Part shown: positions 42,002 through 64,000 of the stretch, piece by piece
Numbering within the stretch: the first letter of the stretch is position 1
Layout of the letters: each line of letters starts with the position of its first letter
Translations under genes and position numbers: made by a program
Notes under the pieces: generated by a model
What the model saw: the letters and a program-made list of their open reading frames with translations, nothing else
Told to the model about the DNA's origin: nothing
Databases searched by the model: none
Origin: Monocercomonoides exilis PA203
Lineage: Eukaryota; Protista; Preaxostyla
Length of the DNA stretch: 64,000 bases
NCBI GenBank assembly: GCA_001643675.2
Contig: LSRY02000056.1
Coordinates: forward strand, 434,001 to 498,000
Direction: 5' to 3'

Positions 42002-42082
<81 letters not shown>

Positions 42083-43543
42083 CTTTCTTTCTCTCTCTCT
42101 TTGCATTCAACCAGATTTGCCTCCAACGTGATAGAGTCCAACTGGCTGCACCACCTCTCCACCATTCTGAAGTCTGCAGTCAACCTCAGCCGGCTGATGC
42201 GTTCAGGGCAGCATGTACTCATCCACTGCACAGACGGATGGGATCGAACGCCTTCACTTTGCTCGCTTATCAGTTTGATGATGGATCCATATCACAGAAC
42301 GATTGCTGGCATGTTTGTGCTCATTGAGAGGGACTGGTGTGCGTTTGGACACAGGTTTGGGCTGAGAACGGGGTGTAAACTCAAACAGAAGCAGAAGAAG
42401 AACGAGAACTTGAAGGAGAAGGAGAAGGAGAAGGAGAAGGAGAAGGAGATGCAAAAATACGGGGAAATGGGGGAAATGTGTTTGGAGGCGGGTAAAGAGA
42501 GAGAAAGACAAAGAGAAAGAGAAAGAGAAAGAGAAAGAGAAAGAGAAAGAGAAAGAGAAAGAGAAAGAGAAAGAGAGAAAGAAGGCAGAAGTGAAGAGAA
42601 AACGATGTTCAAAGCCGACAAATCAGCCATTTCTCCAACTTTCCTGCAGTTTCTTGACTGTGTGCACCAGCTCTGCATTCAGTTTCCAACTGCTTTTGAG
42701 TTCAACCTGAGCTTTCTGTGTTGCATTGCGAAGCATCTTTTCTCTTGCCGGTTTGGACAATTTCTGTGTGACAATGAAAAGGAAAGGAAAGAAAGGAGGA
42801 TTGTGCAGAGGACGGAGTCGCTGTGGAAGTGGATGGAGGGAAAGAAGAGCAAGTATCTGAACCCAGATTATAAGAAGACAAACACGGTATGTGAATGTGA
42901 ATGTGAATGTGAATGTGGTTGTGGATGTGATTGTGATGCGTGTTTGGAATTATGAAGTGATTTGTGCATATGTGATATTATTGTTTATATGCATTGACGC
43001 AAACTTTCTGATTTGTTCAAAATCATTCAATAATAAAACAATACACACATTTCCGTTCTTTCTTCCTTTTCTTTCTTTTTCTTTTCTTTCTTTTTTTTGA
43101 TTTATGAATAAAATATTTATTTATTAATTTATTTCCTTTCCCTTTTCAACTTTTCAACATCCTTTCAGATTCTCAACCCCTCATTCGACACACTCTCTGT
43201 CTGGTCCATCTACTTCCCCCACCACGCCAAGTTCTTCCGACCTCGCTTTCTCAGCCGTCCTCTGCATCTTGTGCCTCAATTAGCCTCCACACCAACCATC
43301 TTGTCTTCTCTCGCTGGACCTCTTTCAATGTTCTCTTCAACTCCTCGCGCTCAGCTGACTATAAATCCACCTATATTTCCCAATCACTCTAACTCTTTTC
43401 GAACTTCAAACAAAATTCACGATGACTCCGATGAATGCCCGTGTGACCAGGCTTCAAAGGAGGTGGCTATTGAATATGTTCCTGCGGAATTTGTATCTGA
43501 TAATTCCGGGTGCGAAGATGATACTGATAGTGACAGATACTAA
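39451..43543 (+). CDS. Myotubularin-family phosphoinositide 3-phosphatase, predicted active; exons ~39451-39607, ~39662-39813, ~39889-41849, 42115-42886, 43169-43543; start codon not resolved
   Basis: PH-GRAM-like LHEGE...GDVTLTNYRIVF, then EYFRMG, WRMTGINKRFEVCDTYP, FRTRGRFPALSY, RSSQP, IADARP, IDNIHKMRNSL, catalytic VLIHCTDGWDRT, DPYHRT, GHRF, SPTFLQFLDCVHQL, FPTAFEFN. Confidence 0.93.
42001..42100. repeat. (CT)n/(CTTT)n microsatellite in a myotubularin intron
   Basis: Pure pyrimidine tract directly upstream of the 42114 acceptor. Confidence 0.9.
42496..42580 (+). repeat. (GAGAAA)n microsatellite encoding Arg-Glu repeats
   Basis: Translates as ERERQREREREREREREREREREREKE inside the myotubularin exon. 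Confidence 0.9.
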
Positions 43544-43829: not shown

Positions 43830-46444
43830 ATGATTTGGATTCCTGTCATCTATTGTGAAACTGAAACCATGCCTCAGTTTCATCTCCACCTCTCAGGGAG
43901 TATGCTGACCAATGACGAAACAATATATGACCAGATTAACGAACAATTACTTCGAGATTTATCCAAGCCAGATAGTAAGATAAAATATCACAAAACTGTA
44001 TGGCTACGCAATTGTTTTTCATAATACTTTGATCATTGTCATATCATTTTTGCTAACAGTTAACCCGAGATGTCTGTCCTATAAATGCCTGCCACCCACC
44101 AGAGGCTATTGATAAGTTAACGTTACAACAGTTTAAAGACTCAGGAGGATGGTATGCACTCAAAAATTGAACAAAAATCCTTTTTATTTTTCTTATTCCG
44201 TATAGTTTTCTTGTTCAAGTTCGCCAAGATTCAAAAAGAAGTGGATATTTTACTGAGACTCTCCACGAATTGAGCTTGTCCAAAACGCTTTGCGTGAATA
44301 CCCATGCGAAATTAGTTGGAACCGAAAAAGAATTAGTCACTCTAAGGGCCCAGTATAACAGAATGAAGCAATTAAATTCCGTTCTCACGGATAAATTAGG
44401 AGATTTGCAAGTTGATTATAAAAAGAAGGAACAACAAATTACCGAATACCAGAAATCAAATGATCAGCTTAAAAAGCAAATTTCAAATTTTCAGCGCTTG
44501 CTCGAAGAAGAGAAAAAACGCTCAAAGCAATTGAGAACGGAAGTTGAGAAGCAGAACAAGCAAATTCTGTTATTAGAAGAAGAAAAAGGCAAACTTCTAA
44601 AAGAACTCAGAAAGCCAATTGTTTCTGCAGAGCGTGTTCCCTCAAGCAAAAACGGATTAAAAGATACTCATCCACTTCTGAATGAAGAAGGCGAGAACAA
44701 AGAAAACAAAGAAAACAGAACCAACAAAGACGACAAAGCGAACGAAAGCGAAGAAAGCGAAGACGACGAAAATGCCACTTATCAGTCGCCAACTGCTTCG
44801 CCTTCAGAAAAGCTGCATTTTCTGGAGTCTCTGTCTGAGATGGAGATTGAAGAAGCTGCAGAACACGAAAGAAACATGAGAAAGCATAACAAGAACAATG
44901 GAGCAGAGGAAAAGAGCGAAATAGAATCTGAGAGTGAGTTTGAGACAGAAGAAGAAAAAGAAGAAGAGGAAAACGTCAATGAGAGGGAGAGAGAGGCCAA
45001 AGAGAAGAAAAGAGAGGAGAAGCAAAAGAGAGGACGCATATGCGAACTGAGGCGTGCCGAGCGCCTTAAAACTAAAGAAAACAAGGAAAATTTGAATGAA
45101 AAAGCAGAAGACAACAAATGTACATCAAGTAATTCTCAACAAGAACAAAATTCAAATCCAATCGTGCCAAATGTGTCTCTGTTTTCTCAATCACTGTTTG
45201 CTTCTCCTTCTCATCAGAAACATAATCAAAAAGAAAGTCCTACCTCAAAAACGACTTCTCAAATTTCTTCTTCTTCTTCTTCTTTTTCTTATTCTTTGGA
45301 CTCATCTTCTCCTTCATCATCATCATCTTCTTCTTCTTCTTTTTCTTCAACACCTTTCTCTTCCTCTTTCTCTACCCCTTCTTCTTCCTCAAATGCTGAC
45401 TCTGTGCTCTCCTTCTCTCCTCATTCAGACAGCACTGCCTCTCAACTCCTCTGCAGTGATGATGAACAATCTACAAGTGCTCTTGATACTTCAGCATCAA
45501 ATGACATAACAAACACAAGATTTCCTTCTGTTTCTTCCTCTTCTGCCTCTTCTTCCTCTTCCTCTTCCTTTTCTTTTTCTTCTTTATCTACTCCTTCCTC
45601 TTCCCCTTCCTCCTCCTCTTCCTCTTCCTCTTTGTTTCCTTTTAATCCTCCTTCTTCTCTTTCTTTATCTGCGCAATCTTCCTCTTCCTCCTCCTCTTCC
45701 TCTTCCTCCTCAACAACCCCTCTTTCTTCTCCCCTCACTTCCCTCTCTTCTCCTTCCCCTTCCCCTCCTCCTCCTTCTCTCTCTGCTTCTCCTTCCTCTC
45801 CTTCCTCACAGCGCCTTCGTGAATACTTTTCTTCTCTTTCTCCTCCGCCCGAGCCTTTTGAGAAGAGGAAAATGGAGATAGAAAAATACCTTTCAAACAG
45901 ACCTTCAATTAATGACATGAAAAAGAGACACATTTTGGCTGGTGTGTGGTGATGGTGAATTGATTTTCTAGTTTTTTTTTGATTTATTTTTGTTAAAAAA
46001 AAAGAGAGAGAAAAGAAGAGTTTTGGAGAGATCATCGTTTTCGCAATGAGCTTTTTAATTATTCGAGTTTGTATTTACACGGAGTAATTTCAAATTCTGT
46101 TGTGACTATTTACTTATAATTCTCATTAACTTTGTTATTTCTTCCCCACATCTTCACATATCCTTTTCTTTCTCCTTCTCCTCCTTCTCCTCCTTCTCCT
46201 CCTTCTCCTCCTTCTCCTCCTTCTCCTCCTCTTTTTATTCCACCATCATTTCATCAGAGCCTGGAGCCCATGCGTCTGTTGTGTCTGTAGGCCATTCTCT
46301 TCATTATGACATACACAGAAACCTGCTCAGCCGGAAGCTGAGGAAAAGAGCAGACAAACAGGACTTGATAGACAGAGGAGTGATTAAAAGTGTGTGGGGT
46401 GTTTGAGAGAAGAGAAAGAGATGGAGAGAGAGAGAGAGGGAGAT

Positions 46445-46484
<40 letters not shown>

Positions 46485-48105
46485 AAAAAGAAAAGAACAA
46501 ATGAGCAGAATGCAAATTCGAAATACTCAGAAAATAGTTAAATGTTATTCAAATGAAATATCCACATTTTTATTGTTTTATTGATTCATCACGATTTATT
46601 TCTTTTTTTCATGTAATTTTTTATTTTTCAATCTTTATTTCTTCTCTTCTCTTTTTCTTTTCTCTTCTCTTCTCTTCTGTTCTTTCTTCTCTCTTCTATA
46701 TCAGCTGCCTCCACCACTGTGAAAGAGAAGCAGCAAGCACTCATCAACGCCATGGAGCAGATAGCAACCTCTTCTCATTCAAAAACCCATCAGAACACAC
46801 ACTCAATATTGAATGAAGTCAGAAATTCAGATAAGACTAGTAATAATAACAATAATAGTAATACTAACAATGCAATGGAAGGAGCAGAAAAAGGAGAGAA
46901 AGAAAAAGAGAGAGAGAAAGAGAAAGGAGAACGAGATAAAGAGAAAGGGAAAGACAAGCCAAGAACCAAGAAGCATGGCCCGTCAGAAGTCATCGGCACA
47001 GAAAGAGAGAAGGGGACAGTGGTGATTGATGTGGAAGATGAAGTCTGCTATCTGCCTCCTCTTTCAACTCGTCTGCTCATTCCAAATGCTGACACTCCAT
47101 TCTCTGTTGCGAATGCTTCTTCTTCTTCTCCTTCTGCTTCTGCTTCTGCTTCTTCTTCTGCTTCTGCTTCTGTTTCTTCCTCTTCTTCTTTTAATTCTTC
47201 TTCTTTGAATTCTTCTTCTTCTTCTTCTTCCTCCTCATCTTCCTCTTCTTTTGTTTCTTCTTTCTCGTCTTCCTCTCTTCATTCTCCAACAGAAACAACA
47301 CATCTTCTTGGCCAATTAGAACAATCTCGTCATTCTTCTTCCTCTCCTTCTTCTTCCTCCTCTTCCTCTTCTTCTTCTTCTTCTCTTTTTCCTTCATCGT
47401 CATCTTCTTCTTCTTCACAAAGAAAGAAGGAAAAGAAAAACTCAAAGAAAACAAAAGCATCAGAAACACAACAAACCAATCCTTCTTCTCTTTCTCCTTC
47501 TTCCTCCTCTTCCTCTTCTTCTCTTTCCTCTTCCCAATCTTCCAAACAAACCAGATCTCATTCTTCTTCTCCAGTCAATCTCTTCACTCTTTCTCCTTCT
47601 CCTGTCTCTCGTTCCACCTCTTCTCCTTCTCCCCCTCCTCCTCATTCTCCTGCCATATCTTCCATCCCTTCTGAAACTAATGATCAAAACAATTCTTCGT
47701 TATCAGCTTCTTCTTCCTCCTCTTCCTCTGTTCCTTCTTCTTCTTCTACCTCTTCTTCTTCTTCTTCTTCTTCTCTTTCTTCCTCTCCCTCTCCTCTCCC
47801 AAAGATAACCAAAAGATCCAATTCAGCCCCAGAGGATGATTATGAGCGAGTGTCAAATGCAACAGAGAAAGCAAGGCAGATGTGGTTGAAGTCACAAGAG
47901 AGAGAGAAGGAGAAGATGAAGGAGAAGATGAAGGAAAAAATGAAAGAGGGGAAGAAGAAGACGGAGAAAATGGAGAAAATGGAGAAATCGGAGAAAATAG
48001 AGAAAGGAGAGAAGGAAGGAGAGAAAGGGAAGAAGAAGAAAGGAAAAGAAAACAACTCAGAAAAGACAACAAAAACAGAAGAAACAGATAAAACTAATCA
48101 AATAA

Positions 48106-48137
<32 letters not shown>

Positions 48138-51100
48138 TCTTCTTCTTCTTCTTCGAAAACAAACAAACAAACCACAAAAACAAAGCTACAACAACAACAA
48201 CAACAAGCTCAAAAAGCACCGAAACCAAAAGCAAAACCATCAAAGATGAGCAGCAAGCAACTGAAACAAACAAAGAATACATCTTCTTCTACTGCTTCTT
48301 CCTCCTCCTCCTCCTCTTCCTCTTCCTCTTCTTCTTCTTCTTCTTCTTCTTCTTCTCCTTCCTCTTCCTTTCCTTCATCTTCTTCCTCCTCCTCTTCCTC
48401 ATCATCAACTTCTTCATCAACAGATAAACCACAAGCATCATCTCCTTATCTTGAACCAACATCAACAGACACAAAAATGAATGAAACTGAACAACAACAA
48501 CAAAAACAAACAGGAGATAAAAATAATGATGCCTTATCTTTCTCTTCTTCTTCCTCTCCTTCTTCTTCTTCCTCCTCTTCTTCCTCTTCTTCTCAACAAA
48601 CTCATTCAAAATCAACAGGAGCATTCACATTCTGTGAACCGCACACAATCACAGTAGATTCATCAGCCTCAGCACTCCCCACGCCTCACAATGCATCTTC
48701 CAATCAGAAAGAGTCTTCTTTTTCTTCTTCTTCCTCTCTTTCATCTTCATCTTCATCTTCTCTTTCCTCTTCCTCTTCTTCTTCTTCTTCCTCTTCCTCT
48801 TCCTCTTCCTCTTCCTCTTCTTCTTCCTCCTCCTCCTCCTCTCCTTCTCCTTCCTCTTCTCCCTCTCCTTTCGACATCTGCCGTGATGACAACACCTTCC
48901 CCCGCAGTCAGTTTGCTCCTTGCATCGATGCCTTCTTCAACCCAAACTATGCAGAAGCAGGCGAAAATGCTAACTTTACAGTAGAAGAAGTACAAAAAGC
49001 CAAAGAAACAAATGCATATGCACATGATAGCTCTTCTGCTCTTGCTCTTCTTGCTTCGATTGCTTCTTCTTCTTCTTCTTCTTCTTCTTCTTCTTCTTCT
49101 TCTTCTTCTTCTTCTTCTTCTTCTTCTTCTTCTTCTTCTTCTTCTTCTTCTTCTTCTTCTTCTTCTTCTTCTTCTTCTTCCTCCTCCTCCTCCTCCTCCT
49201 CCTCCTCCTCCTCTTCCATTTCTTCGTCTTCATCTTCATCATCAACACCTACATCATTTAACTTTAATAGTTTTGCACATATTAGTAAATCGCCATCAAC
49301 AATGCCTTCCTCCTCCTCCTCCTCCTCTTCTTCTTCTCTTTCTTCTCTTTCTTCTTCTTCTCTTTCTTCTCTTTCTTCTTCTTCTCTTTCTTCTCTTTCT
49401 TCTTCTTCTCTTTCTTCCTCCTCTTCTTCTTCCCTCTTCTCCCTCAAACCCTTCCACGCTCGATCCTCACAAACAGCCAATCTTGATGCTGCCAAGAAGC
49501 AAGTGGCATTACAAGGGAAAGGCAAATTAAATGACGAAACTTTTAACTTGCTTAAGGAAGTTGTTAAGACACAGGAGAAGAAGAAAGATATGCTTGCTTC
49601 TTCTTCTTCTTCTTCTACTGCTTCTTTTCCTTCTTCTGCTTTTTCATCTTCTTTTCCCTCTCCCTCTCCATCTTCTTCTTCTCTTTCTTCTCTTTCTTCT
49701 TCCTCTTCTCCTTCATTTGCCCGTACGGCACATGAATTAGAAGAAGGACGATATTTAGACACAAATGATAGAGTAGCCTCAGCCAAAGAAGAAGGAGAAG
49801 AAAGAAAAGAAAGAGAAAGAGAAAGAGAAGAAGAAGAAGAAGAAGAAGAAAATGACTTTCAAACTAGCAATAAACCCAAAATAGGAGCAGATATTTCAAC
49901 ATACCTTCACAACACATTTGCTGAGGCATCAAAAAGGGAAAAGCTTGGATCTTTTGGTTTTCCTACGTTTAATTCTGCTTCTTCTTCTCTTTCTTCTTCC
50001 TCTTCCTCTTCTTCTCTTCCTTCATCTTCTTCTTCATTGTCTTTTCTTTCTTCTCGTTCACTTGCTTCGTCTTCTCCTTCAACTGCTTTTAAGAAAAACA
50101 CAAAATCAATTAGTTTTGGAGGAGAAGGAAAAGAAAGAGGAAAAAGAGAAGAAAAAGAGGAAAAAGAGGAAAAAGAAGAAGATGATGATGATGATTCAGA
50201 TATATATGAGTTTAAATCAAAGAATGAGATTAACAGAAGAGTTGATTATGGAACATTTAGCAGTGAAAAGAGTAAAATAACAAGTGTGAAACATGATGAA
50301 GAAGGAGAAGGAGGAGGAGAAGAAAAGAGAGAGAAGGAAGAAAATAATGAAGAAGGAAAAGGAAAAGGAGAAAAAGGAGAAGAGAAAGAAGAGAAAGAGA
50401 AAGAAAAAGAACAACAAAACACCAAAATGGATAAGAAGCAGAAGAAGAAAGAGAAAAACAAGAAGAAGAAAGAGAGGAAGAAAGCAGAGAAAGAAGAGAG
50501 GAAGAAACAAATGGAAGAAAACAATACAACAGAAAAGATTGATACAAAAGAAAGAGAAGAAAAACAGGAAGAAAAAGAAGAAAAAGAAAAAGAAAAAGAC
50601 AAGAAAAAGAAGAAAGAAGAAAACGAACCAACAATAAAAGAGAAAGCAACAAAAGAAAAGGGAAAAGAAAAAGAAGAAAAGAAAGAAGAAGAAGAAGAAA
50701 ACGAAGATAAACAAAAAGAACAAAAAGAACAAAAGGGAACAAGTGGAGAAAGTGAGCAAAAACAAGATTCAACAGAAAAAGCATCAGCAACATCTTCTTC
50801 TTCTTCACAACCAACAAATTCTTCCTCTTCTTCTTCCTCTTCCTCTGCTTCTTCTTCTTTATCAACCTCTTCAGAACCATCAGAACCAAACAAAACAAAC
50901 CAATCAGAATTTTCAAAAACATCAGAAGACAAGAAAGACAAGCCATCACAACAACAACAACAAAATTCATCTTCCTCCTCCTCCTCATCATCTTCTTCAT
51001 CTTCTTCATCTTCTTCATCTTCTTCTTCCTCCTCCTCTTCCTCTTCTTCTCTTCCTTCAAACCCCAAATCCGAAAAAGAATCCGAATCTCAATCAGAAAG

Positions 51101-54100
51101 CGACAAAAGAGAAGCGAAGAAAGAAGAAAACAAGAAAATCGAAGAAAAAAAGAAAGCTCTTTCGATTTCTGCTTATTTGCCATCGTTGACAGAGCCACTG
51201 ACAAAAGAAGAGAAAAAACAAAAGCAAGCAGAAAGGAAAGAGAAAGAGAAGAAAGAAAGAGAAGAGAAGGAGAAAAGAGAGAGAGAGAGGAAGGAGAAGG
51301 AGAAGAAAGAGAGAGATGAGAAAGAGAAGAGGGATAGAGAAAAGAGAGAGAGGGAGAAGAAGGCAAGGGAAGAAAAGCTGAAGGAAGAAAAGGAGAAGAG
51401 AGAGAAAGAGAAGGAGAGGAAGGAGAAGGAGAGGAAAGAGAGAGAAGAGAAGGAGAGGCAAGAGAGAGAGAAGAAGGAGAAAATGAAGAAGGAAAAAGAA
51501 GAGAAGGAGAGGCAAAGGAAGGAGCAACAAGAAAAGGAGAAAGAACAAAAAATGAAAGAGAAAGAAAAAGAAAAACAAAAAGAAAAACAAAAAGCTCAAC
51601 AAACAACACAGAAGAATGCTCAACAACTTTCTTCATCACAAAAATCAGAAAAATCATCTTCTTCATCACAAGCAGCATCAAAAGACAAAGAGAAAGAGAA
51701 AGACAAAGATAAATCATCTTCTCAATCAACAAATGATACAAAGCAATCAACATCATCAGCTTCTTCTTCTTCCTCCTCCTCTTCTTCTTCTCATTCTTCT
51801 CATTCAGCAGCTCAACTTCAATCCAAACCCAAAAATAGCTCAAAACAAGCACAAACACAAACAACAGCGAAACCGAAGCAAACAACTGCCAATTCAACAG
51901 CAAAATCACAATCGAATGCGAAGAAGGAGAAAGTTGAGAAGAAAGGGAAGAAGAAAGGAGAAAAGGAAGAGGCAGAGAAGGAGATGGACAGAGAAAGAGA
52001 GCAGATGAAGAAGGAAGAGGAGGAGATGAGAGAGAGAGAGAAAGAGAAAGAGAAAGAGAAAGAGAAAGAGAAAGAGAAAGAAAAAGAAAAAGAAAAGATG
52101 AAAGAAGCAGGAAAACACCAAGATGATAAGAAAGATACAGACAATAAATCAACATCAACAACATCATCAGCACAACATAATCATTCTGAAACATCTGCTT
52201 CTTCTTCAGCCTCAAATGAAATATCTTCTTCTTCCTCTTCCTCTTCTTCCTCTTCTCTAACCACTCCAACACTGCCAAGTCAATCAAGAATGCGTTCTGC
52301 TTTCACCCCTGTCTCTTCTTCCTCTCCTCTTAATTCTCCTTCTCTCTCTCTTTCCTCTTCCTCTTCCTCCTCCTCCTCTTCTTCTTCTTCCTCTTCCTCT
52401 TCCTCTTCCTTTTCTTCCTCCTCTCCTTCTTCTTCCTCCTCCTTCAATCCAATGCTCACCCCCCAGCGTGATATTAAGCATCTTGCATTCAACACTGCCT
52501 CTCCTCCTTTCTCACCAAGACGGGGTGAGTTGACTCCTTCTTCCTCTGCTTTTTCTGCTTCTTCTCGTTCTTCTTCTGCAAATTCTCCTTCTTCCTCTTC
52601 TTCCTCTTCTACTCCTCAGAACTTTTCAGTGGTATATGCCAACTCTCAATCTTCACAACAGAACCTACAATTTACACAGCCCCAGCATTTCTCTTCATTC
52701 AACTCTTCTTCTCTCTCTTCCTTGTCTTCTCCTTCTCTCTCTCAATCAGCCAATTCTTCTTCTTCTACTACTTCTTCCTCCTCTTCCTCTTCCTCCTCTT
52801 CTTCTTCCTTCCTCTCTTCCTCCACTCTTCCTCCTCGTCCTTCACAGAACAGTCAACAGAAACACTCAAGCGAACCAAACCGTTTTCATTGGCTTCCTTT
52901 GAAGAATAAAACAGTTTCATCAGCATCATCATCTGCAGCACTGTCAGAAGAAGAGAGAGAAAGAGAAAGAGAGAAGGATAAAGAGAAGGATAAAGAAAGA
53001 GCTAAAGAAAGAGAAAGAGAGAAGGAAAGGCAACAATATGTCTACAACAACGACAGCACCCTTCTTCCTTCTCATTTGCTCCCAACACAATCTCTATCAT
53101 ACCAACAGCCTCAGCAAAACCATCCTTCTTCTTCTTCTTCTTCTTCCTTCTCAGCTATTCTCCTTCCTTCTGCCTTCTCTCCCATCCCTTCCCTCAACTC
53201 ATCCCCATCCTCTTCTTCTTCTTCTTCTTCTTCCTCTCCCTCTCTCTCTTCTTCCTCTTCCTCTTCCTCCTCTTCTTCTTCTGTTGCCCATCTGCACTGC
53301 CCACGCTCCACCAAGCCCACAACTTTCCCTGAGCCTTACTCCAGGCTCTACATCGGCTCCATCAACGACAGAGAGATGGATTGCTCTGACATGCCTGTCA
53401 CAATCGAGGAGATTGAGAGGAATCTGAAGAAAGACGTTCAGTCAGAAGCATACGAAAGAGATGTGCTGGGATTAGCTTACAGAGGAGATGCAACGTTCTC
53501 ATCGGCTTTTCCGTACAGTCAGCAGAACGGGATGTTTGCAGCACCATCATCTTCTTCTGCTTCTGCTTCTTCTTCCTCTTCGTCATCATCTTCTTCTCAT
53601 TCCATGCAGCTTCAGTCACTGCCATTACAGAGAAACACACAGGGCACTCCGCAATCCATCGGCTCCTTCCACAGCTTCTCCCACACTCTCCCTTCGAAGC
53701 ACACGATCGGCCTCACTCCATTCTCTGTCTCCTCCTTCACAGCTGTCGTGCCTGATGCCTGGAGAATGGGCGACGACATCAACCCAGACGAAGACTTCCA
53801 CAACGACGAGAAGGATTTTCCTCTGACTTCGCGCTCTCTGACTGACGATGAGGCCATCCAGAGACACAACTTGCTCTCTCGCAATTCATTCTCAGTCAAT
53901 CCACGCCTTGCCTCGGGCCAAGCTCAGTATGCAGATGCCTTTTCTCCTTCGTTTGATAGCTATGCGGCTGTGAATGGAAGAGGGAGAAGGGTGTTCTCCA
54001 CTACTGATGATGTGATTCCTGCGCATTCATCGTCGTTTGACAACAGAAACCTCCCTATTCAACAAGGGCTGAGTCAGCGCTCACATCCAACAACCACACA

Positions 54101-54884
54101 ATCTCTACATGCATACACCACTTCTTCTTCTTCTTCTGCCAATCAATCTCTTTCCTCCACTGCCTCTCTGAACCACCTGAAGTACATCCAGCAATCTTCT
54201 TCTTCTTCTTCTTATTCTCCTTCCCTTGCCCCTTCTTCCCCTTCTACCTCTTCCCTCACCCGCTCCATCCATCTCCCCACTCGCCAGTCAAATTCTGTCC
54301 CTCCCCAAACCTTCCTCTTCAATGAGCAGCTGACTGACACCTCTTCCATTCAGTCTGTGCCTTCATACATCTCACCCGCCACCTCCCCCGTTCTCCCTTC
54401 TTTCAACCCTATTCAACAGCAAAGCTCTTCTTCTGTTTATCATCCAAACGGCACATCATCATCTTCTTCTTCTCCCTCCTCCTCCTCCTCATCATCATCA
54501 TCATCATCCTCTTCTTCTTCCTTATCATCTTCACAATACATTTCATCTCCCTCTCATTTCATCTATCCACACAGCACACCCCACTCCTCACACACCAACA
54601 CTTCATCTGACTCACGCCGTGCAAAGACACCTCAGCCTTATCCTTTCCCTCTCCTCTCTTCTGACCAGTCGCCTGCCTCTGCCTCCTTCTCCTCTTTCGA
54701 CCCTGCCTATGACGATGCTATGAAGGACAGAGCGAAAAACACACTGCAATCGGGCTATGCATTTGGTGTGCAGAGAGCTTCGACTCCACAGCCAACATCT
54801 TCGACTTCTATTTCTTCGTTGACTTCTTCTTCATCTTCTTCTTCTTCTAATTCTTTCTCTTCTTCCTCATCTTCAAGCTCATCA

Positions 54885-54919
<35 letters not shown>

Positions 54920-57900
54920 CAAAGCATTATCCACCTTTTCCCCTTCCTCCTTCTCCCGTGTCCTCCACAACTCTCCTCAGCAGCGCCCTGTTTCTCCTTC
55001 CAGCTCTTCCATTGCCTCTGCTCTTTCCACATCCACTCAGCACAGCCAGTCCACATCGCAAGTGCCTTCTCTCTCCACCTCCCGCAAACACCTCTCCCTC
55101 GCCTCTGCTAAAGCTGCCCCATTCTATCCATCTTCTTCTTCCAATCAGTCATTCAAAGCCATTCGTGGCAGAACCTCATCAACAGATGCTGCTCAGACCT
55201 CATTCGACAGAAGATCATTGGCAAGTGAAGGGGATGCTGAGATTGGAGGAGAGAGAGAAAGAGAAAGAGAAAGAATGATTGCCTCAGACGACAAACGCTC
55301 TTTGAGAGAAGAAATGCTGTCTGCTGCCTCACACGAGAGAGGGAGGGTGAGTGAGAGAGGAAGAAGCACCGCTGACAGAGCAATGGCCAATGCACGCTCT
55401 CATTCACAGTCTGCACAGCCCATCCCGCTTTCGCCGTCCATCCGGTCTATTTCTTCAGTCAGTTCTCTGCCAACGTCTGTTGAAGATATGGCTGCATTTG
55501 GAGAGAGAGAGAAGGAGAATGGAGAGCAAATGAGAGGAGGGATGAGTGATGTGTTCTCAGCCACTGCGCCTCTGCCTGTGACATCGACGAGGAAGACATT
55601 TGGAGACATACAAGAACTGCAATCGAGTCAACAACAGGAGAAAGAAAAGCATTCTTCATTGAACTTGCCAAGAATAAACTCATCTGTAAAGACGAGTGAT
55701 GATAACAAAGCTGCTCATTCAAATCAGACAAATGGAGGATCTTCACAGCCGTTTTCTTTGGATTCTGCTTCTTCTTCTTCTGCTGCTGCTGCTCCTTCTT
55801 CTACTGATTCTTCATCTTCCTCCTCCTCCTCTTCCTCTTCCTCTTCCTCCTCTTCCTCTTCCTCTTCCTCCTCCTCTTTTTCTCTTCAATCTCTCCCTCC
55901 TCTTTCCCCCAGCAAAGGCCGCCTCCACTTCAGCAGCTCTCCTTCCACTCTCGTCCGCTTCCAGTCTCCTCTCCCTTCTGCCCCTTCTGTTTCTTCCTCT
56001 TCCTCCATCAACTCTCTCAACCTGTTCTCTTCAAAGATCCCCAGCCAGCCTCACAAGTTCTCTTCAAGGCAGTCCTTCAACTCATCCCCTTTGACTTTGT
56101 CGTTTTCTCGTGAGTCACTTTCAGGCGATGCTTCTTCCCTTTCACTTCGATCTTCACTGGCTGGGAAATTTGGATCTTCCTCGTTATCTTCGTCATCATC
56201 ATCATCTTCTTCTTCTTCTTCTTCTTCTTCTTCTTCACGTTCTTCCTCCTCCTCCTCTTCCTCCTCTTCTCTTTCATCGTCATCATCATCTTCTTCTTCT
56301 GTTTCTGGCAATTCTTCTGAAAAGCGTCGTCCATCTGAAGTTGTTGATGACAAATCCTATGTCTATCCATTGACACACTCTTCTTCCTCTTTCTCGCCTC
56401 GTCCACCTTCTGCTCCCTCTTCTACTGCTGCTGCCTCTTCTCATTTAACTCGCTCTCATTCTGCTTCTTTTGTTTCTTCTTCTTCTTCCAATTCTTCTTC
56501 CAATTCTTCTTCCAATTCTTCTTCCTCATCTTCTTCCTCTTCCTCTCCTTCCTCTCAGTCCATCTCCTCCTTCTCCAACCATTCCACTCCAACTGACTCT
56601 CCTTCATTCACTTTGAATGCTGCTCAATCGCCTTCTGCTGAGCTCGACCCATCTGCTGTGACACCTGCCCCTCTCTCCACCACTCCTGTCTCTGAACAGG
56701 AACAGTCTCAAACTTCTTCATTTTATTCTCAACAGCAACAGCAAACACAGCAGCAGCAACAACAAGGTTATCTTGCCTCTCAGCAATTCCAGCCAAAGTC
56801 AACACCAACAAGAAATGCTCAGTCCAATTTCATCTTCCAGCCATCGGGGACAAACTCATCATCTGAACTATCTTCTCCACAGGTTGCACAGGGAAATACT
56901 TCACCTTCATCATCATCATCATCTTCTTCTTCTTCTTCTGTAATCTCTTCTCTTCCTCATCTCCCCCAGAATTCTCCTGCTGCATACTCCTCTCCATCCC
57001 CATCTCCTGTGCCATATCAGCCAGGTCTTCCATACACCACCACCACTGCTGCTGCTGCTCTTTCCCAACATCCCCAGCTCCCAGTTATTTCTCCTCCTCT
57101 TCCTCCTTCATCATCATCAACAACATCCATCTCATCTCTCCCAAACACTCTCCATCCACAAGGTCTTCCTCTCCCCTTGCAGCCCAACCCTGCTCTTGCT
57201 GCAATGGTGCCTGCTGCTCAGATGAATGCACAAATGACTGCACAGATGGCTTCACAAGCAATGCCAGCTGATCTGCCCATGCAGTTCTATCCAATGTCCC
57301 CTGCTTCTGCATTGCCAGTGGCTGGCGGGTATGCTATGCCCTATATGGGCAACGGGATGTATCCTTATTATGCAGCACTCCAGTCGATGATGATGGGACA
57401 TCAACGGCAAGTGAACACGCCATTCATCTACACTCCCTCTCAACAGCAGCAGTCACAGCAGCAAAGCCAACAACAATCTCAACAAGCACAATCACCGCAG
57501 TCTCAACAGCAGCAACAACAACAACAGACCCAGCAAATGCAGCAAAGCCAGCAGAACCAACAGCAAATCCTTCAGCAGCTCCAGCAAATGCAGCAAATGC
57601 AGCAGTTTCAGAGGATGTCGATGATGCAGTCACCTGCGTTCCACCCTGTCTCTTCTCAAATGCCTTCTCCCTTTCCAGGTGCAGGCGTGGGTATGTCTAT
57701 CCTTCCCCACCCTCCTTTCTCTCCTCCTTTCATGTTCCCTTCTCAGAACCCTCAACAGCAACAGCAACAGCAGCAGATAATCTTGTCTCTCATGCAGCTC
57801 CAGGCTCAGCAGGCTGTGGAGCCTTCTGCCTCTGCGCCTGCCTCTTCTTTACTTTCTGCTTCCACATTCGGACGCATTCGATCACTCGCCAGTCTGTTTG

Positions 57901-60900
57901 CAAGGTTAAACAGATTGGGCTTTCGAGAATCAACAAAGGCGTCTGCTAATTCGATGCTGCACTTGACAGTTATTCCTTCTGGGAGAATAAACACCAACAA
58001 AAGAAAGCAGAATTCTGCTGTGAATACAAACGCAAATACAAATACAAACACAAATACTCAAGTGAATACGAATATGAATGCCAATGCAAAGAATTCTGAA
58101 GAGAATGCTCTGTCTGCTTGTGCATCATCCAACCCTGTCTCTCCAGACACTGCCTCTGATTCTCTCTCAAGCAACACTTCTTCCATTCCATCAGCATTGG
58201 AATCTGTTACAGCTCCAACTGTAAAGAAAATCAATCAGAATCCACATCCATCCACAGATCTTGTTAAAGCATCGCTTGTTGCTTCTCCATCATCCTCTTC
58301 TTCTTCCTTCTCCACAACAACAACAACAGCCATTGATACCTACGTCAAACACCCTCCTGTCTCTATTCCATTGCGCACAGCCTTTGTCCACACTTTCTCC
58401 CTCGTGTCATCCCTCATCCACTCTGCTTATAAGAAATCCTCTTCGTTCAATTCTAAACCCCTTTCGTTCTGTGCACCTTCTCTTGGCTATTCCACACACT
58501 TGACGATTCCTCCCCAGCCTTTCCAGCACTTTACCACTGCTGCTTCTTCGCTCTACACAATCACTGGACTCTTCTCTCTCTATTTCCTGTCTTTGGCTGA
58601 TGCACATGTGCCTTCTATTCCACCAGCCATTCTTGGAACTGTCATCAACCCCAATGAGAAAGAGACTGGGAGCCCGTCCTCATCTGCTGCTGGGATTTCT
58701 TCTGTGGTGGCTGTAAGATATCCTGTCCAATCAGCATCTTCTTCTTTCTCTTTTTCCTCTTCCTCTTTCACTCCCTTCTCCTTCCCCCACTCCCCTGAAG
58801 AGCATGAAACCTCTCTTGTCCGCCTCTCTCATCCATCGTCTGTGGCTGACATGTCTCCTGATGGAGAAATGGCTTCATTGCCATGGCTGTCACATCCATC
58901 TGGTGTTTATTCGTTTGTGGTGGATGAGATGGTTGAATGGATGGAGAAGGAGAAGAAAGAACACGAAGAGAAGCTGAGGAAGGAGAGGGAGAAGGCGAGG
59001 AGAGAGAGGGAGAGGAAAGAGAGAGAGATGGAGAAGAAGAGGAAAGAGGAAGAGGAAAGGAGGAAGAGAGAGGAAGAAGAAGAGAAAGAAAGAATTGCAG
59101 CAGGAGATTCAGAGAAACCGAATAAGAAGAAGAAGAAGCGAAAGGGAAAGCAAAAAGGAAAAGAAAAAGATCAAAACGAAGACAAAGAAGGATCACCGAC
59201 AGCAGATACACCTTCTTCGACAGCCACATCTTCTGCTTCGAAAGCCAATCAAGCAGGTTCTATTCAAATCTCTCCTTCTCCCTCTTCTTCCCCGTCTCTT
59301 TCCCTTTCTCTTTCTTCTCCCTCGCCTTCGCCTTCTCCGCTCTCTTCTACCATTCTTTCTACTCCAACAGCAACATTATCAGAAGATCAAATGAATTCTA
59401 GTGAAAATGATGCTTTGGCTTCTATTTCTGCCTCACAAAAGCTCCCGTCTTCCATCTGGGCAGCTCTGCATTCATTCTATCGCACACAAAATCCATCAAA
59501 TTCTCAATCTTCTTCTTCTTCTTCTCTTTCCTCCGACAACAAGCGCTCATTCACCATCCCCTCCTCCATCAAAGAGAAGATGCTGTCTGACGAGATCTCT
59601 GCCTTCCACTCGTACATGTCCCTCACAAAAGCCGAATGTCTTGCACGTTTTGATGTCGTTGACCGCATTCTGCAGACTGCGCTGTGCATCAACAAGAACC
59701 TGGTGATGTGTGTCTATGGCTCTCTGTCGACTTATCTCTCTCTCCCAACCTCTGATGTGGATGTGGTGTTCATCACAGTGCCCCAGCTGAGATATGTGCT
59801 GCGGATACAGAGACTGATTAGGGTGCAGTTTGAGAGGTGGTATGGCGCGAAGTTTAGAAGAGGGGAAGAGAAAGAGAAAGAGAAGGAGAAGGAAAAAGAA
59901 AAAGAGAAAGAAAGTAAAGAAGATAGGAAGAAGAAAGGGAAGAAGGAGAAGGAGAAGGAGAAACTAGAGAGGCTGCTGAAGAAGGAGAGGCAGAATGCAA
60001 AGAAGTTGGAGTCATTCAAAAACGATTATGTGAGCATCATTGAAGAGAAGCTGTATGGAAGAGTCCAAAAGGATAATGAAGGGAAAGACAAGAACGGAAG
60101 CAAAGCAAACAGAGAAAGCAGAACAGAACAAGACAAAGGAGCAAATGATGCGCCAACAGCATTCCCATCAAATATCACATCTTCACTGGAGAACTTCGAA
60201 GGAACACAAAACGACCAAACCACATTTTCTTCCTCAGCAGAGTCAACAGAGCAATCTCTTCAGCCATCTATTTTACAACAACAACAACAACTTCAGCAGC
60301 GGTCGTCTCAAAGACCTTCAATAGGCATTTGTGTTCGGTGTGGCACGTTGGATCTGAATGGACACTGCATCTGCAAAGCATACGCGACAATTGATGAAGA
60401 GGACAGGATTGCGAGAGAACTGGAGAAAGGAGAGAAGAAAGAGAAGGAGAAAGAAAAGAAGGAAGGTGACAGAGAAGATGGTTCACAGGGAAAGCAATCT
60501 GATGCCGCTAATGCTTCCAATCAAGATGGTGGGCAAACTTCTTCTTCTTCTTCCAAAACTTCTTCCTCTTCCTCATCCTCTTCTCTCTTCCCTCCTCTTT
60601 CTCCTCTTACCTCTCCTTCTCCTGGAGTACAGCGTACCCCATCTCCATCTTCTCTTCCATCTGCTGTCTCTGCTTTGCTCCAATCTTCTGCCACTTCTTA
60701 TTCATCAACTGCCCTTTCTTCCTCTTATCACGCCATTTTCGACTTTACTGCTCCTCTTTTTGCATCAGACAACGAAACAATTTTATCTCTCTTTGCTTCT
60801 CCTTCGTATCCTCATGTGCCTCCTAAACAAAGTACTTCTCATTCTTCTTCCTCCTCATCTTCTTCTTCTTCGGTTCTTTCTACTCAATCAAATGATGATA

Positions 60901-63900
60901 ATGTTGATTCCATGCAGTCAAAGATTACTGAATCATCAGCAGCTTCTCCTTTCTCATCGTCCAATCAATTGAGCACAAAAGTTATTCCTCTTGAAACATC
61001 TGACAATTCTGTTTCATTTGTTTCACTGGAACACACTCAAACAACAACTAAATTATCATCAACAACAGAATCAACCACAACTCCAGTGATTCCTCAGCTT
61101 ACCCTTACAAATGAGAAGCAACAGAACAAAGCACCAACCAATGCAATATCGCCTTCATTAAATGCATCACATTCATCGCTGACTGATCGTTCTTCTCCTG
61201 TTTCGATCACAAACACAGACAATTCAGAGTCAGGCGATGGAACAGAAAGAGAGAAGACAATACAGATGGATATGCAGAACAATGAAGAACATGGTGAGGA
61301 AGAGGAGGAAGAGGAAGACATCAATGAAGACAGCTGCGAAGCAAAGAATGCAAAGAATGCTAAAGAATCAAAGAAGAAGTCCAAGAAGCTGAAGTCAGAA
61401 GGAGAGAAAAGAGAGGTCACAACAGGAATGAAGAAGTCATCATCAGCACCTTCTTTGCAGATAGTTGCAACACCCAAAGCGATTCTGGCACAGATGAGTG
61501 ACGAAGACGAAGATGGTGAGGGAATAATCGTTGGGCAGATTGGTGTGGATGAGTGGGAGCTTGCAGCAGACAGCAGAAATGGAGAGAATGGAGGAGCAGG
61601 AGGAGGAGTTGCAAGTGCAAGTGCAGAAGGAGGATGTGATGGTGAATCAATGAGCTCTTCTCGCCATGCATCTTCTCCGCTCTCCACTCCCCTTCGACCA
61701 GGAGCAGTTCCCAGCATCATCGGCTCAGCTACTTCTGCCAGTCAGTCAGGAGAATCTGTATATTCTCCTTCTATTTCATTCACTCAGCTCTTTTCTCCTC
61801 ATCCGCAGGGTATCACCTCTCCGTCTCCGCTAGTCTATCCACCCACTGCTCCTTCCCCTACACACACAAATATCTTCACCTCACGCGCCTCTCCTTCACT
61901 TCAGCCACGCACAATCACACCACCTCCTTCATCTTCTCCTCGTCCTTCTCCTCTGCATCGCTCACTCCAAACATCTGCTCCTTCTTCTTCGAATTCAGAT
62001 GGAAAAACAGAGCTAGAATCTCCGAGTCAGCTGGGGCTTTCATACAATTTGTTGGGAGATTCCAGTGCATCATTATTATCAGCATCATCAACAACTTCAT
62101 CATCATCGAAGTCAAATACAATAGACACTGCAAATACAGCACAAACATCATCAACAACATCAGCTGCTTCAGCGATTTCCAGCACATCCACACAGCTCTC
62201 TTCAACCACCGGCACGACATCCACTCTCTGCCAGCCATTCAAACCACCAGACACTTCTTCCGCTGTCGATCTATTCACCCGCCTGCCTGCTCCTCCCACA
62301 GTCACCCGCAGCGAGACAGTCGAGAAACTACGTGAGCTCCACCAGATATTAGCACACAACCCAGTTTTCCCTCCGATGCCTCTGAACTTCCTCTCCTCAG
62401 CGAGTGTGCCCATCCTCAAAGGAGAAGATCAGAAGACAGACATCCACGTGGACATCGGCTATGGCACTGTGTCTGGCATTGTCAACTCAGACTACGTCAG
62501 ATGCCTGCTGACTGTGTATCCAGCAGCACGACCGCTCATCGTTGTGCTGAAGACGTTTCTGGCATATCATCACCTGAACGAGCCATACAAGGGAGGAATG
62601 AGTGGATACCCGCTGACACTTCTGGTTGTGTCGCATCTGCAGCAGTTCAAGCGCAACTTTGGAGAGGACTGGGAGAATGCGTCGCTGGGGAAGCTGCTGG
62701 TCACTTTCTTTGAGCTGTATGGAGAATCTCCAACTCTGCCAATGCCTTCTGCTGCTAACTGCTCGTCGACCACTGACTTTTTGAATTCTTCTTATTCTTC
62801 CTCGTCTTCATCCGGTTCTTCGGGCGAGGATGGCTTTTCTTCATCTTCTCCTTCCTCTTCTTCATCTTCTCTATCTTCATCAACTACAACTTCTCCTATC
62901 AAAGACGGAAGCAGCACTGGAATCAGTGGAAGTGGTGTAGGCAGTGGGAGCAGTGGAATGGCAGTTGCATCAGCCATCTCTCCAGCAACCTCTGCGTCTG
63001 CACTGCCTCAGCGCTTCTCCTTCTCAAAGTATGCAATTTCTGTGAGAGGGCACGGGGCATATCTCAATTTGGAGCAACTAAAGCACACCAACCGCAGCCT
63101 GGCGATGCGAACGGACTTTACGTTCTGCCCAATTGTGGTGGAGGATCCGATGAACATTGAGAACAACACAGCCAGAAGCTGCTTTGCCATCTCCACCATT
63201 CAGAAGCAGTTCCGACTGGCGTATCAGCAGCTGCGATGGACAGAGATGACTGAGAAAAGCTCACTTGCCTTTTTCCAGCCATCACACTCGCCTTCTGTTT
63301 CTGCAATTTCATCGCTTTCATCGCTTTCTGAATCGACTGCCTCGTCAGACGGGACAACTCCACAGTCACCACTTTCTCAGCAACAGACTCCGTTCATGTC
63401 TTCGAGCGCATCAATAGCACATTCACACTCAATGGTCGCCTTCACTTCTCTGCCACCTCCTGAACTTCTGGAGAAATACGACGATATTTTGACTCTGCGC
63501 CAGGCAATTGAGCGAAGAACAAGTGCGAAAGAAGGCGAAACGTATCAAATTGGTTCAGATGAGAAAACAGTTCAAAACGGCACTATATCATCAGCATCAT
63601 CATCATCAAGCACATTGACTGATTCATCACAAATATCGAGTGATTCGAAGGACGCTGGAGCAGAAACACCATCAGCAGGATCCACTCCTCTTCCATTTCA
63701 CAGCAGTTCATCTTCTCCTGGTTTAATCAGCCACACCACTACCACTTCAACCACTTCAGCTACTGCCTCCTCCTCCTCTTCTTCTTCTTCTTCCACTTCA
63801 CTTTCTTCTTCCCCTGCACAGTCATATCCTCTCATCCGCCTGCCTCGCCCACTCAATGCGCCCTTGTCTCGACTGCTCTTCAGAACTTCCAACAGCTTCA

Positions 63901-64000
63901 CTGTACCCACCTGCCTCGGTGACATCTTCACGTTTGATGCGCTTTTTGCAGAGAGACGCTCGCAAATGAACCGTTTCATGGAAGAGACGCCTCAGTTCGG
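43830..64000 (+). CDS. Giant (>6400 aa, 3'-incomplete) protein: coiled coil + 2 RPEL motifs + low-complexity region + Trf4/PAPD5(TENT4)-like nucleotidyltransferase; proposed exons 43830-43997, 44060-44151, 44206-45941, 46258-46389, 46705->64000
   Basis: All four introns are GT-AG and frame-consistent. The frame at 46707 is the same as that of the polymerase motifs at 59751 and 62400. The ORF track lists no stop-closed ORF in that frame despite many in-frame ATGs, so it is open to the window end. The 5' start is uncertain. Confidence 0.8.
45860..46389 (+). other. Two RPEL-like motifs in adjacent exons
   Basis: IEKYLSNRPSINDMKKRHIL (end of exon 44206-45941) and LSRKLRKRADKQDLIDRGVI (exon 46258-46389) fit LxxxLxxRPxxxELxxRxIL; the second lacks the Pro. 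Confidence 0.75.
49063..49217 (+). repeat. (TCT)n(TCC)n microsatellite encoding ~50 consecutive Ser
   Basis: Uninterrupted trinucleotide run in the giant exon. Confidence 0.95.
59560..63240 (+). other. Trf4/PAPD5-like NTase + PAP-associated domain, in three pieces (~59560-59790, ~62310-62725, ~63010-63240)
   Basis: LSDEISAFHSYMS...RFDVVDRI...VYGSLSTYLSLPTSDVDVV; SASVPILK...IHVDIG...RPLIVVLKTFL...LNEPYKGGMSGY...SHLQ...LGKLLVTFFELYG; FSFSKYAISV...VEDPMNIENNTARSCF...IQKQFRLAYQQL. Confidence 0.92.

Follow-up and report, generated by a model that had tools for sequence, protein, structure and literature searches.

The locus at positions 43830–64000 (forward strand) of a 64,000-nucleotide (nt) stretch of Monocercomonoides exilis PA203 DNA (contig LSRY02000056.1; the whole stretch is referred to below as the window) raises the question of whether RPEL motifs and a Trf4/TENT4-type poly(A) polymerase are encoded there by one gene. 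The initial annotation had proposed that they are, and the frames, junctions, RPEL motifs and polymerase motifs were all found at the coordinates it had given, with the junction as written. The best explanation of the locus, to which we assign a probability of about 0.5, is one five-exon gene that would encode a 6,543-residue protein combining RPEL motifs with a Trf4-type enzyme. Such a protein would start with a coiled-coil-like, low-complexity N-terminal part, followed by an RPEL pair that repeats every 44 residues as in MRTF/MAL, with the second motif on a symmetric 132-nt exon of its own; a disordered stretch of about 3,900 residues rich in Ser, Lys and Glu would then lead to a conserved C-terminal Trf4/TENT4-type module of about 1,900 residues.

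Exon structure of the locus

A stop-to-stop scan gives an open frame of 593 codons at 44171–45949, with the terminal residues ...KYLSNRPSINDMKKRHILA, and a second one that runs from 46617 to the end of the window (5,794 codons) and reaches its stop 69 codons further on, after ...MQIGGG. The first of these frames contains exon C (44206–45941), which consists of heptad-rich, coiled-coil-like sequence and of acidic and Ser-rich low-complexity sequence, with RPEL motif 1 at its end; it ends in phase 1. Its 3′ boundary is set by the GTGTGTGG donor, while the 5′ boundary is tentative and comes from an enumeration of open, frame-consistent models. The same enumeration gives a tentative first coding exon at 43830–43997 (ATG 43830 or 43869, donor GTATGG at 43998) and a tentative exon 2 at 44060–44151 (acceptor CTAACAG at 44059, donor GTATGC at 44152). 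Intron 1 (45942–46257, 316 nt) extends from GTGTGTGG to CATCAG and is followed by exon D (46258–46389), which has 132 nt or 44 codons, starts and ends in phase 1, and encodes a spacer and RPEL motif 2, ending in ...LLSRKLRKRADKQDLIDRGVIK. The candidate intron 2 (46390–46704, 315 nt, GTGTGTGG...TATATCAG) is the putative link between the RPEL and polymerase halves. Exon E begins at 46705, fills the window to 64000 and stays open for a further 205 nt, up to 64205, which gives it a length of 17,501 nt; it carries the conserved module only from about 58540. The putative junction of exons D and E translates as ...GVIK-T-ASTTVKEKQQALINAM, and the five-exon model comes to exactly 6,543 codons. The candidate 5′ exons were tested jointly only for an open frame; profile and homology searches were carried out exon by exon.

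Exon E is unusual in composition, with 27% Ser, about 64% low-complexity sequence and 25 serine runs of at least ten residues. It also contains 11 non-repetitive segments of 66–170 residues each.

The first of the two introns is the more straightforward. Exon D has no ATG, and it comes into the correct phase only after removal of 45942–46257. The GC content of this segment is 0.34 as compared with 0.47 in the flanks, and its ends pair with each other (minimum free energy (MFE) −62.7, z −4.0). Since exon D lacks an ATG and the MAL-like spacing of 44 residues between the motifs arises only after splicing, intron 1 is well supported as a prediction.

The RPEL pair

RPEL motifs bind monomeric actin (G-actin) in the cleft that separates its subdomains 1 and 3, and they control the localization or activity of MRTF, Phactr and ArhGAP12-family proteins. 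The first motif of the locus lies at 45881–45937 (KYLSNRPSINDMKKRHIL; genome-scan match C54:479881–479937) and the second at 46326–46388 (LLSRKLRKRADKQDLIDRGVI). Searched alone with the RPEL profile PF02755, exon D gives 20.4 bits (E 4e-4) and the exon C tail 15.8 bits (E 0.011). A six-frame scan of the 82.3-Mb genome (101 contigs, E up to 10) with the same profile returned three matches in all; the first and the third are the motifs of exons D and C, on one strand and 389 bp apart, and the exon D motif is the top match genome-wide.

Comparison with proteins of known structure gave the same assignment. When a 43-residue piece of exon D was searched with phmmer against 177,635 PDB sequences, five matches were obtained, all of them RPEL chains: four from MAL/MKL1 and one from Phactr1. 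The sole match of the 47-residue exon C tail was the Phactr1 RPEL domain (4b1z_M, E 0.0089), where it aligned to all three repeats. In a search by protein-language-model (ESM) features, 30 of 30 neighbours were RPEL clusters for each motif, with top scores of 0.93 for exon D and 0.92 for the exon C tail. The Arg-to-Arg spacing of the two motifs after splicing, counted by hand, is 44 residues; in the PDB alignments the RPEL period is 44 residues in MAL and 38 in Phactr1. The RPEL core and the flanking hydrophobic helix positions (L/I-x-x-K/R-L upstream, R-x-I-L downstream) are present in KYLSNRPSINDMKKRHIL and RKLRKRADKQDLIDRGVI. The RPEL identification made in the initial annotation is thus borne out by sub-threshold PF02755 matches, the genome scan, and the PDB and ESM searches, which agree, and on this evidence the motifs of exons C and D are a predicted genuine RPEL pair. 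From the role of RPEL motifs in MRTF, Phactr and ArhGAP12-family proteins, the pair would be expected to bind G-actin.

An alignment of 45811–46257 with 46258–46704 gave no convincing nucleotide homology that would point to a tandem duplication of an RPEL exon with its intron; the two segments are alike in layout alone. The initial annotation had further described the residues that follow the exon D–exon E junction (TASTTVKEKQQALINAM) as RPEL-linker-like. This description is unsupported, as neither a third RPEL motif nor an RPEL linker was detected downstream of the junction.

The Trf4/TENT4-type polymerase module

In the last 1,500 residues, Pfam profiles identify a central domain (PF22600, MTPAP-like_central, 54 bits against a cut-off of 27) and a PAP-associated domain (PF03828, PAP_assoc, 31–33 bits against a cut-off of 22.6); the match to NTP_transf_2 is weak (17.7 bits). 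Pfam profiles gave no match within the initial 3,000 residues of exon E. The top solved relative in a PDB search is yeast Trf4 (3nyb_A, 60 bits, E 7e-16), which aligns in three colinear segments, followed by GLD2 (29 bits, E 2e-6), TUT4 (23 bits) and URT1 (20 bits).

A HMMER search with the C-terminal 615 residues as query found 2,909 relatives of the enzyme, ten of them with E below 1e-30. Eight of these ten come from Blattamonas nauphoetae, where they bear the name DNA polymerase sigma or PAPD5/7-like; the other two are metagenomic fragments. The best relative, KAK2961223.1 (P0001 in our numbering; 1,949 aa, ‘putative DNA polymerase sigma’), is colinear with exon E residues 3946–5759, numbered in the translation read from 46707. 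The colinearity covers about 1,000 residues of P0001, with 47–64% identity in the main blocks.

The catalytic domain is split. The N-terminal half of the palm (59574–59855) comprises a helix and the YGS and SDVD elements, aligns with Trf4 residues 20–83 and is 47% identical to P0001; the catalytic motif itself, YGSLSTYLSLPTSDVD (YGS...SDVD), lies at 59715–59762. An insert of about 800 residues, mostly of low complexity (59856–62264), then separates the DxD strand from the strand bearing the third Asp. The second half of the palm and the central domain (62265–62759; PF22600) align with Trf4 residues 113–228 at 47 bits, and the third catalytic Asp, in HVDIGY at 62445–62462, is invariant across nine relatives (alignment A2). 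A Ser-rich insert of about 83 residues (62760–63008) precedes the PAP-associated region (63009–63233), which runs from VVEDP (near 63135) to NNTARS, is 64% identical to P0001 and aligns with Trf4 residues 263–296. The Pol-beta-type signature is complete (hGS, DxD and third Asp), and its GS, DxD and third Asp are conserved with the relatives. Judging by the PDB scores and the names of the relatives, the enzyme is nearer to the Trf4/PAPD5/7 branch than to Cid1, GLD-2, TUT4/7, MTPAP or Star-PAP. The C-terminal module is a predicted Trf4/TENT4-type non-canonical poly(A) polymerase, as the initial annotation had it: Trf4 is the top solved relative, the Blattamonas relatives carry polymerase sigma or PAPD5/7 names, and PAP_assoc scores above its cut-off.

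The palm insert contains a Cys4 motif, CVRCGTLDLNGHCIC (60330–60374), of the form CxxCG-x7-9-CxC, within a block that is colinear with P0001. Trf4/TENT4 enzymes oligoadenylate RNA in partnership with Mtr4 and a zinc-knuckle protein (Air/ZCCHC7). In the TRAMP complex the zinc knuckle is thus supplied in trans by Air or ZCCHC proteins; by analogy, the Cys4 motif may be a built-in zinc knuckle that takes the Air/ZCCHC role. The Blattamonas relatives have palm inserts in the same place, which are shorter (260–440 aa). The CxxCG-x7-9-CxC motif recurs in M. exilis paralogues on contigs C5, C14 and C28 and in P0001, P0006, P0007, P0008 and P0010; it is absent from P0002, P0004 and P0005, and is common to most of the oxymonad Trf4-like clade.

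The M. exilis genome has at least ten Cid1/TENT-family loci (contigs C5, C8, C14, C22, C28, C30, C47 and C55; L004–L025). Because several of these lie inside open frames of 1,800–3,960 codons, giant size appears to be a habit of the genome and not of one gene. The paralogues on C47 and C8 best match URT1, CutA and Cid1, while that on C30 is a compact Trf4-like gene. The exon E enzyme falls within an oxymonad-specific expansion, apart from the compact C30 gene.

Probable splicing of exon D to exon E

The connection between the two modules depends on the candidate intron 2, which the initial annotation rightly named as its weak link and for which sequence support was found in the donor 8-mer, the phase, the context of the downstream ATG and the pairing of the intron ends. 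The 8-mer GTGTGTGG occurs six times in the window, counting both strands, where 0.5 copies are expected, and three of the six are on the plus strand. Two of these three are in phase 1, directly after the last RPEL residue, each at a drop in GC content; the remaining four copies in the window are away from frame ends. The candidate donor of intron 2 accordingly matches that of intron 1 in its 8-mer, its phase and its position with respect to the RPEL motif. The phase of the candidate acceptor fits the giant frame, a one-in-three event by chance. Donors are loosely defined in this genome: among 11 inferred introns of Ras-family genes they include GTGTGT, GTGTGC and GTTTGT.

The sequence in front of ATG 46752, the methionine at which a separate polymerase gene could start, was compared with that in front of 14 control start codons (12 Ras genes, the start of the five-exon model itself and one annotated neighbour). 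The 120 nt before ATG 46752 have a GC content of 0.41 and a pyrimidine fraction of 0.75, including a 41-nt pyrimidine run up to TATATCAG, and the last 47 nt have a GC content of 0.55; the controls have GC contents of 0.19–0.29 and pyrimidine runs of 5–14. Because its upstream composition is unlike that of all 14 controls, ATG 46752 resembles an internal Met that follows an acceptor more than it does a start codon.

The candidate intron 2 has a GC content of 0.31, and its GA-rich 5′ half pairs with its CU-rich 3′ half (MFE −96.5, z −3.2). Introns 1 and 2 share a similar build: each is about 315 nt long, is purine-rich towards its 5′ end and CU-rich towards its 3′ end, and folds end to end, with closing pairs 3–313 and 9–313. 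End-to-end pairing was also seen in two of three other long introns and not in a 286-nt intergenic control, in what is a small sample. Taken together, the donor, acceptor, start context and pairing make the splicing of exon D to exon E somewhat more probable than not, if a mixture of isoforms is counted as fusion.

As a more general observation on long introns of the window, in each of those at 45942–46257, 46390–46704 and ~42887–43168 a 5′ part rich in purines or GT pairs end to end with a CU-rich 3′ part, which brings donor and acceptor to within a few nt of each other. The same end-to-end pairing is present in one of two long Ras-gene introns examined.

Alternative gene models

A number of observations weigh against a single fused gene. 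Without splicing, the exon D frame reaches a stop at 46404–46406, five codons past the putative donor, and an AATAAA follows about 77 nt downstream (near 46483). ATG 46752 is in frame with the giant open reading frame (ORF), and an intergenic gap of 287 bp just upstream of the locus shows that closely spaced tandem genes occur here. These features would suit two adjacent genes on the same strand, namely a 714-residue protein of coiled-coil and low-complexity sequence that closes with the RPEL pair and has exon D as its last exon (...RGVIKSVWGV-stop) and a 5,818-residue Trf4-like gene from ATG 46752, in which case actin binding and RNA tailing would be unconnected. Conservation is absent from the N-terminal 3,900 residues of exon E, and this stretch therefore has no tie to an upstream exon. 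Annotation is of little help: no model for the locus was found in three length-windowed searches of annotated proteins (PAP region, 3170–10087 aa; exon C start, 315–1003 aa; exon E start, 1001–3185 aa), in which blanks are uninformative. Annotated proteins of the M. exilis assembly do occur in the collection searched, among them that of a neighbouring gene, and the locus may be unannotated or modelled unexpectedly.

The closest relatives of the enzyme point in the same direction. In a maximum-likelihood tree of 30 rows, built from the segments matching P0001 residues 1534–1800 with the two enzyme segments concatenated and the remaining database matches excluded, P0001 is sister to the exon E enzyme (support 81/90). 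P0001 stands alone as a single-exon gene; the next gene upstream is 137 bp away on the opposite strand, which leaves no room for upstream exons. No RPEL motif was found by Pfam at E 0.1 in P0001–P0012, and a regular expression for the RPEL core, which recovers both motifs of the window, found none in the 150 best enzyme homologues and none in the six frames of the 25.8-kb Blattamonas P0001 locus. There is no synteny with the Blattamonas locus beyond the enzyme gene, the flanking genes being different, and no orthologous loci were found in two metagenome scans. The closest sequenced relative thus does not share the association of RPEL with the enzyme, and because the sister gene in Blattamonas has no RPEL motif, this association would be specific to the Monocercomonoides lineage at best.

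A pair of separate genes nevertheless has its own difficulties. It needs a rare 8-mer to have recurred by chance at the exact RPEL-relative position and phase of a real donor, together with a chance in-phase acceptor behind a long pyrimidine run, and it needs translation to start at an ATG whose context is unlike that of every control. A weaker point is that no 714-residue model containing exon C was seen among the annotated proteins of 315–1003 aa, where the neighbour is present. We regard two separate genes as possible, if on the unlikely side. The coexistence of donor, acceptor, early stop and AATAAA could also mean that both products are made, alternative polyadenylation within 46390–46704 giving a short RPEL protein and splicing giving the fusion. 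Exon D might in addition be a cassette exon, since with 132 nt and phase 1 at both ends its skipping would keep the frame, exon C to exon E being in frame as well. Such a dual output seems to us improbable.

It may finally be asked whether the locus is functional at all, or whether the RPEL-like strings are chance products of low-complexity sequence and the giant frame is decaying or driven by repeats. Scored exon by exon, both RPEL matches are under the 23-bit whole-protein cut-off of PF02755. The cores, RPSINDM in motif 1 and RADKQDL in motif 2, depart from RPxxxEL, with E replaced by D in both motifs, L by M in motif 1 and P by A in motif 2. The Pro is dispensable, as the PDB alignment shows for RPEL1 of MAL (RRTREEL), which lacks it as well. 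The large share of low-complexity sequence in exon E is a further point of concern, and a minus-strand mirror ORF at 50260–52302 shows that biased composition can keep frames open. Against this, four independent lines indicate RPEL (the genome scan, the PDB matches, the ESM neighbours and the spacing), 17.5 kb are free of stops, including the 11 non-repetitive segments, and the catalytic residues and flanking blocks are 47–64% identical to Blattamonas. A non-functional locus is very improbable.

Possible function and comparison with known systems

Judged from known RPEL proteins, the pair would be expected to take up one or two actin monomers; if the single five-exon gene is real, occupancy by G-actin would then set the location of the enzyme or its binding to partners. 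One route, which is speculation, is that actin masks basic residues in or beside the motifs (EKRK..., RKLRKR), in the way that it masks the nuclear import signal of MRTF. The result would be that RNA oligoadenylation is tied to the pool of monomeric actin. Direct steric gating of the Phactr or ArhGAP12 kind is unlikely because of the ~3,900 disordered residues between the RPEL pair and the catalytic module, and control of localization or partner binding would be the more plausible mechanism. That the fusion is real, that its RPEL pair binds G-actin, and that an oxymonad Trf4-type tailing or surveillance enzyme is consequently gated by actin monomers is, as a chain of propositions, doubtful.

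The enzyme shares with Trf4/Pap2 of yeast TRAMP and with TENT4A/B (PAPD7/PAPD5) the Pol-beta-type hGS, DxD and third Asp, as well as the central and PAP-associated domains, and no RRM was detected. It differs in that the palm is split by the ~800-residue, Cys4-bearing insert, in the additional insert of ~83 residues before the PAP-associated region, and in the length of the predicted protein, which is about 10 times greater. KAK2961223.1 has the same split palm, Cys4 motif and C-terminal tail, with 47–64% identity in colinear blocks; in contrast to the proposed fusion, the Blattamonas protein is encoded by a single exon, has 1,949 residues and is without RPEL.

With MRTF-A/MAL the predicted M. 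exilis protein shares tandem RPEL motifs of 44-residue period, with basic residues inside and beside them, and its RPEL2 resembles RPEL1 of MAL in lacking the Pro. It has two motifs, however, not three, located about 650 residues into the protein and not at the N-terminus as in MAL, and it lacks the SAP, B1, Q and transactivation regions. The Phactr1–4 and ArhGAP12/9/27 proteins are similar in that RPEL motifs are placed on an enzyme or enzyme-regulating module, letting G-actin gate its activity, and RPEL1 of M. exilis aligns best to the Phactr1 repeats. In Phactr, however, the motifs abut the PP1-binding tail (with a period of 38 residues in Phactr1), whereas in M. exilis ~3,900 disordered residues lie in between.

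RPEL motifs are the best-understood sensors of G-actin; the proteins so far known to be gated by them are transcription cofactors (MRTF), PP1 cofactors (Phactr) and RhoGAPs. Within the literature searched, no paper combined RPEL with Trf4, TENT4 or PAPD5, nor RPEL with Monocercomonoides. The fusion, if real, would be a new, lineage-specific domain architecture assembled from two known modules. RNA 3′-end modification would then join the processes that are read out from the actin monomer pool, the first case of actin dynamics being wired directly to an enzyme that modifies RNA 3′ ends, and an amitochondriate oxymonad would have reused RPEL independently, outside the transcription-cofactor, phosphatase and RhoGAP contexts. 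Even as two genes, the locus would document that a metamonad has RPEL motifs and that giant Trf4-like enzymes with a split palm and an embedded Cys4 motif have undergone an oxymonad-specific expansion.

Other features of the window

A myotubularin-like phosphatase is encoded on the plus strand at 39862–43543, with a frame change near 41900–41960, an intron at ~42887–43168 and a stop at 43541–43543. On the minus strand, 36266–39232 encodes an eIF3c-like protein of 989 aa, the sole product of the window confirmed as an annotated public protein. A plus-strand frame of 3,067 codons (8132–17332) matches the C-terminal lobe of a protein kinase only (profile positions 160–258, residues 2915–3014), with no match to the N-lobe. 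The minus-strand frame at 50260–52302 has 681 codons and lies opposite the part of exon E that is rich in Lys and Glu (AT skew 0.54); most likely it is an artefact that mirrors the biased composition. An intact-looking plus-strand ORF of 420 codons at 1035–2294, with DDE_3 and Tc3-type HTH domains, is probably a Tc1/mariner-type transposase.

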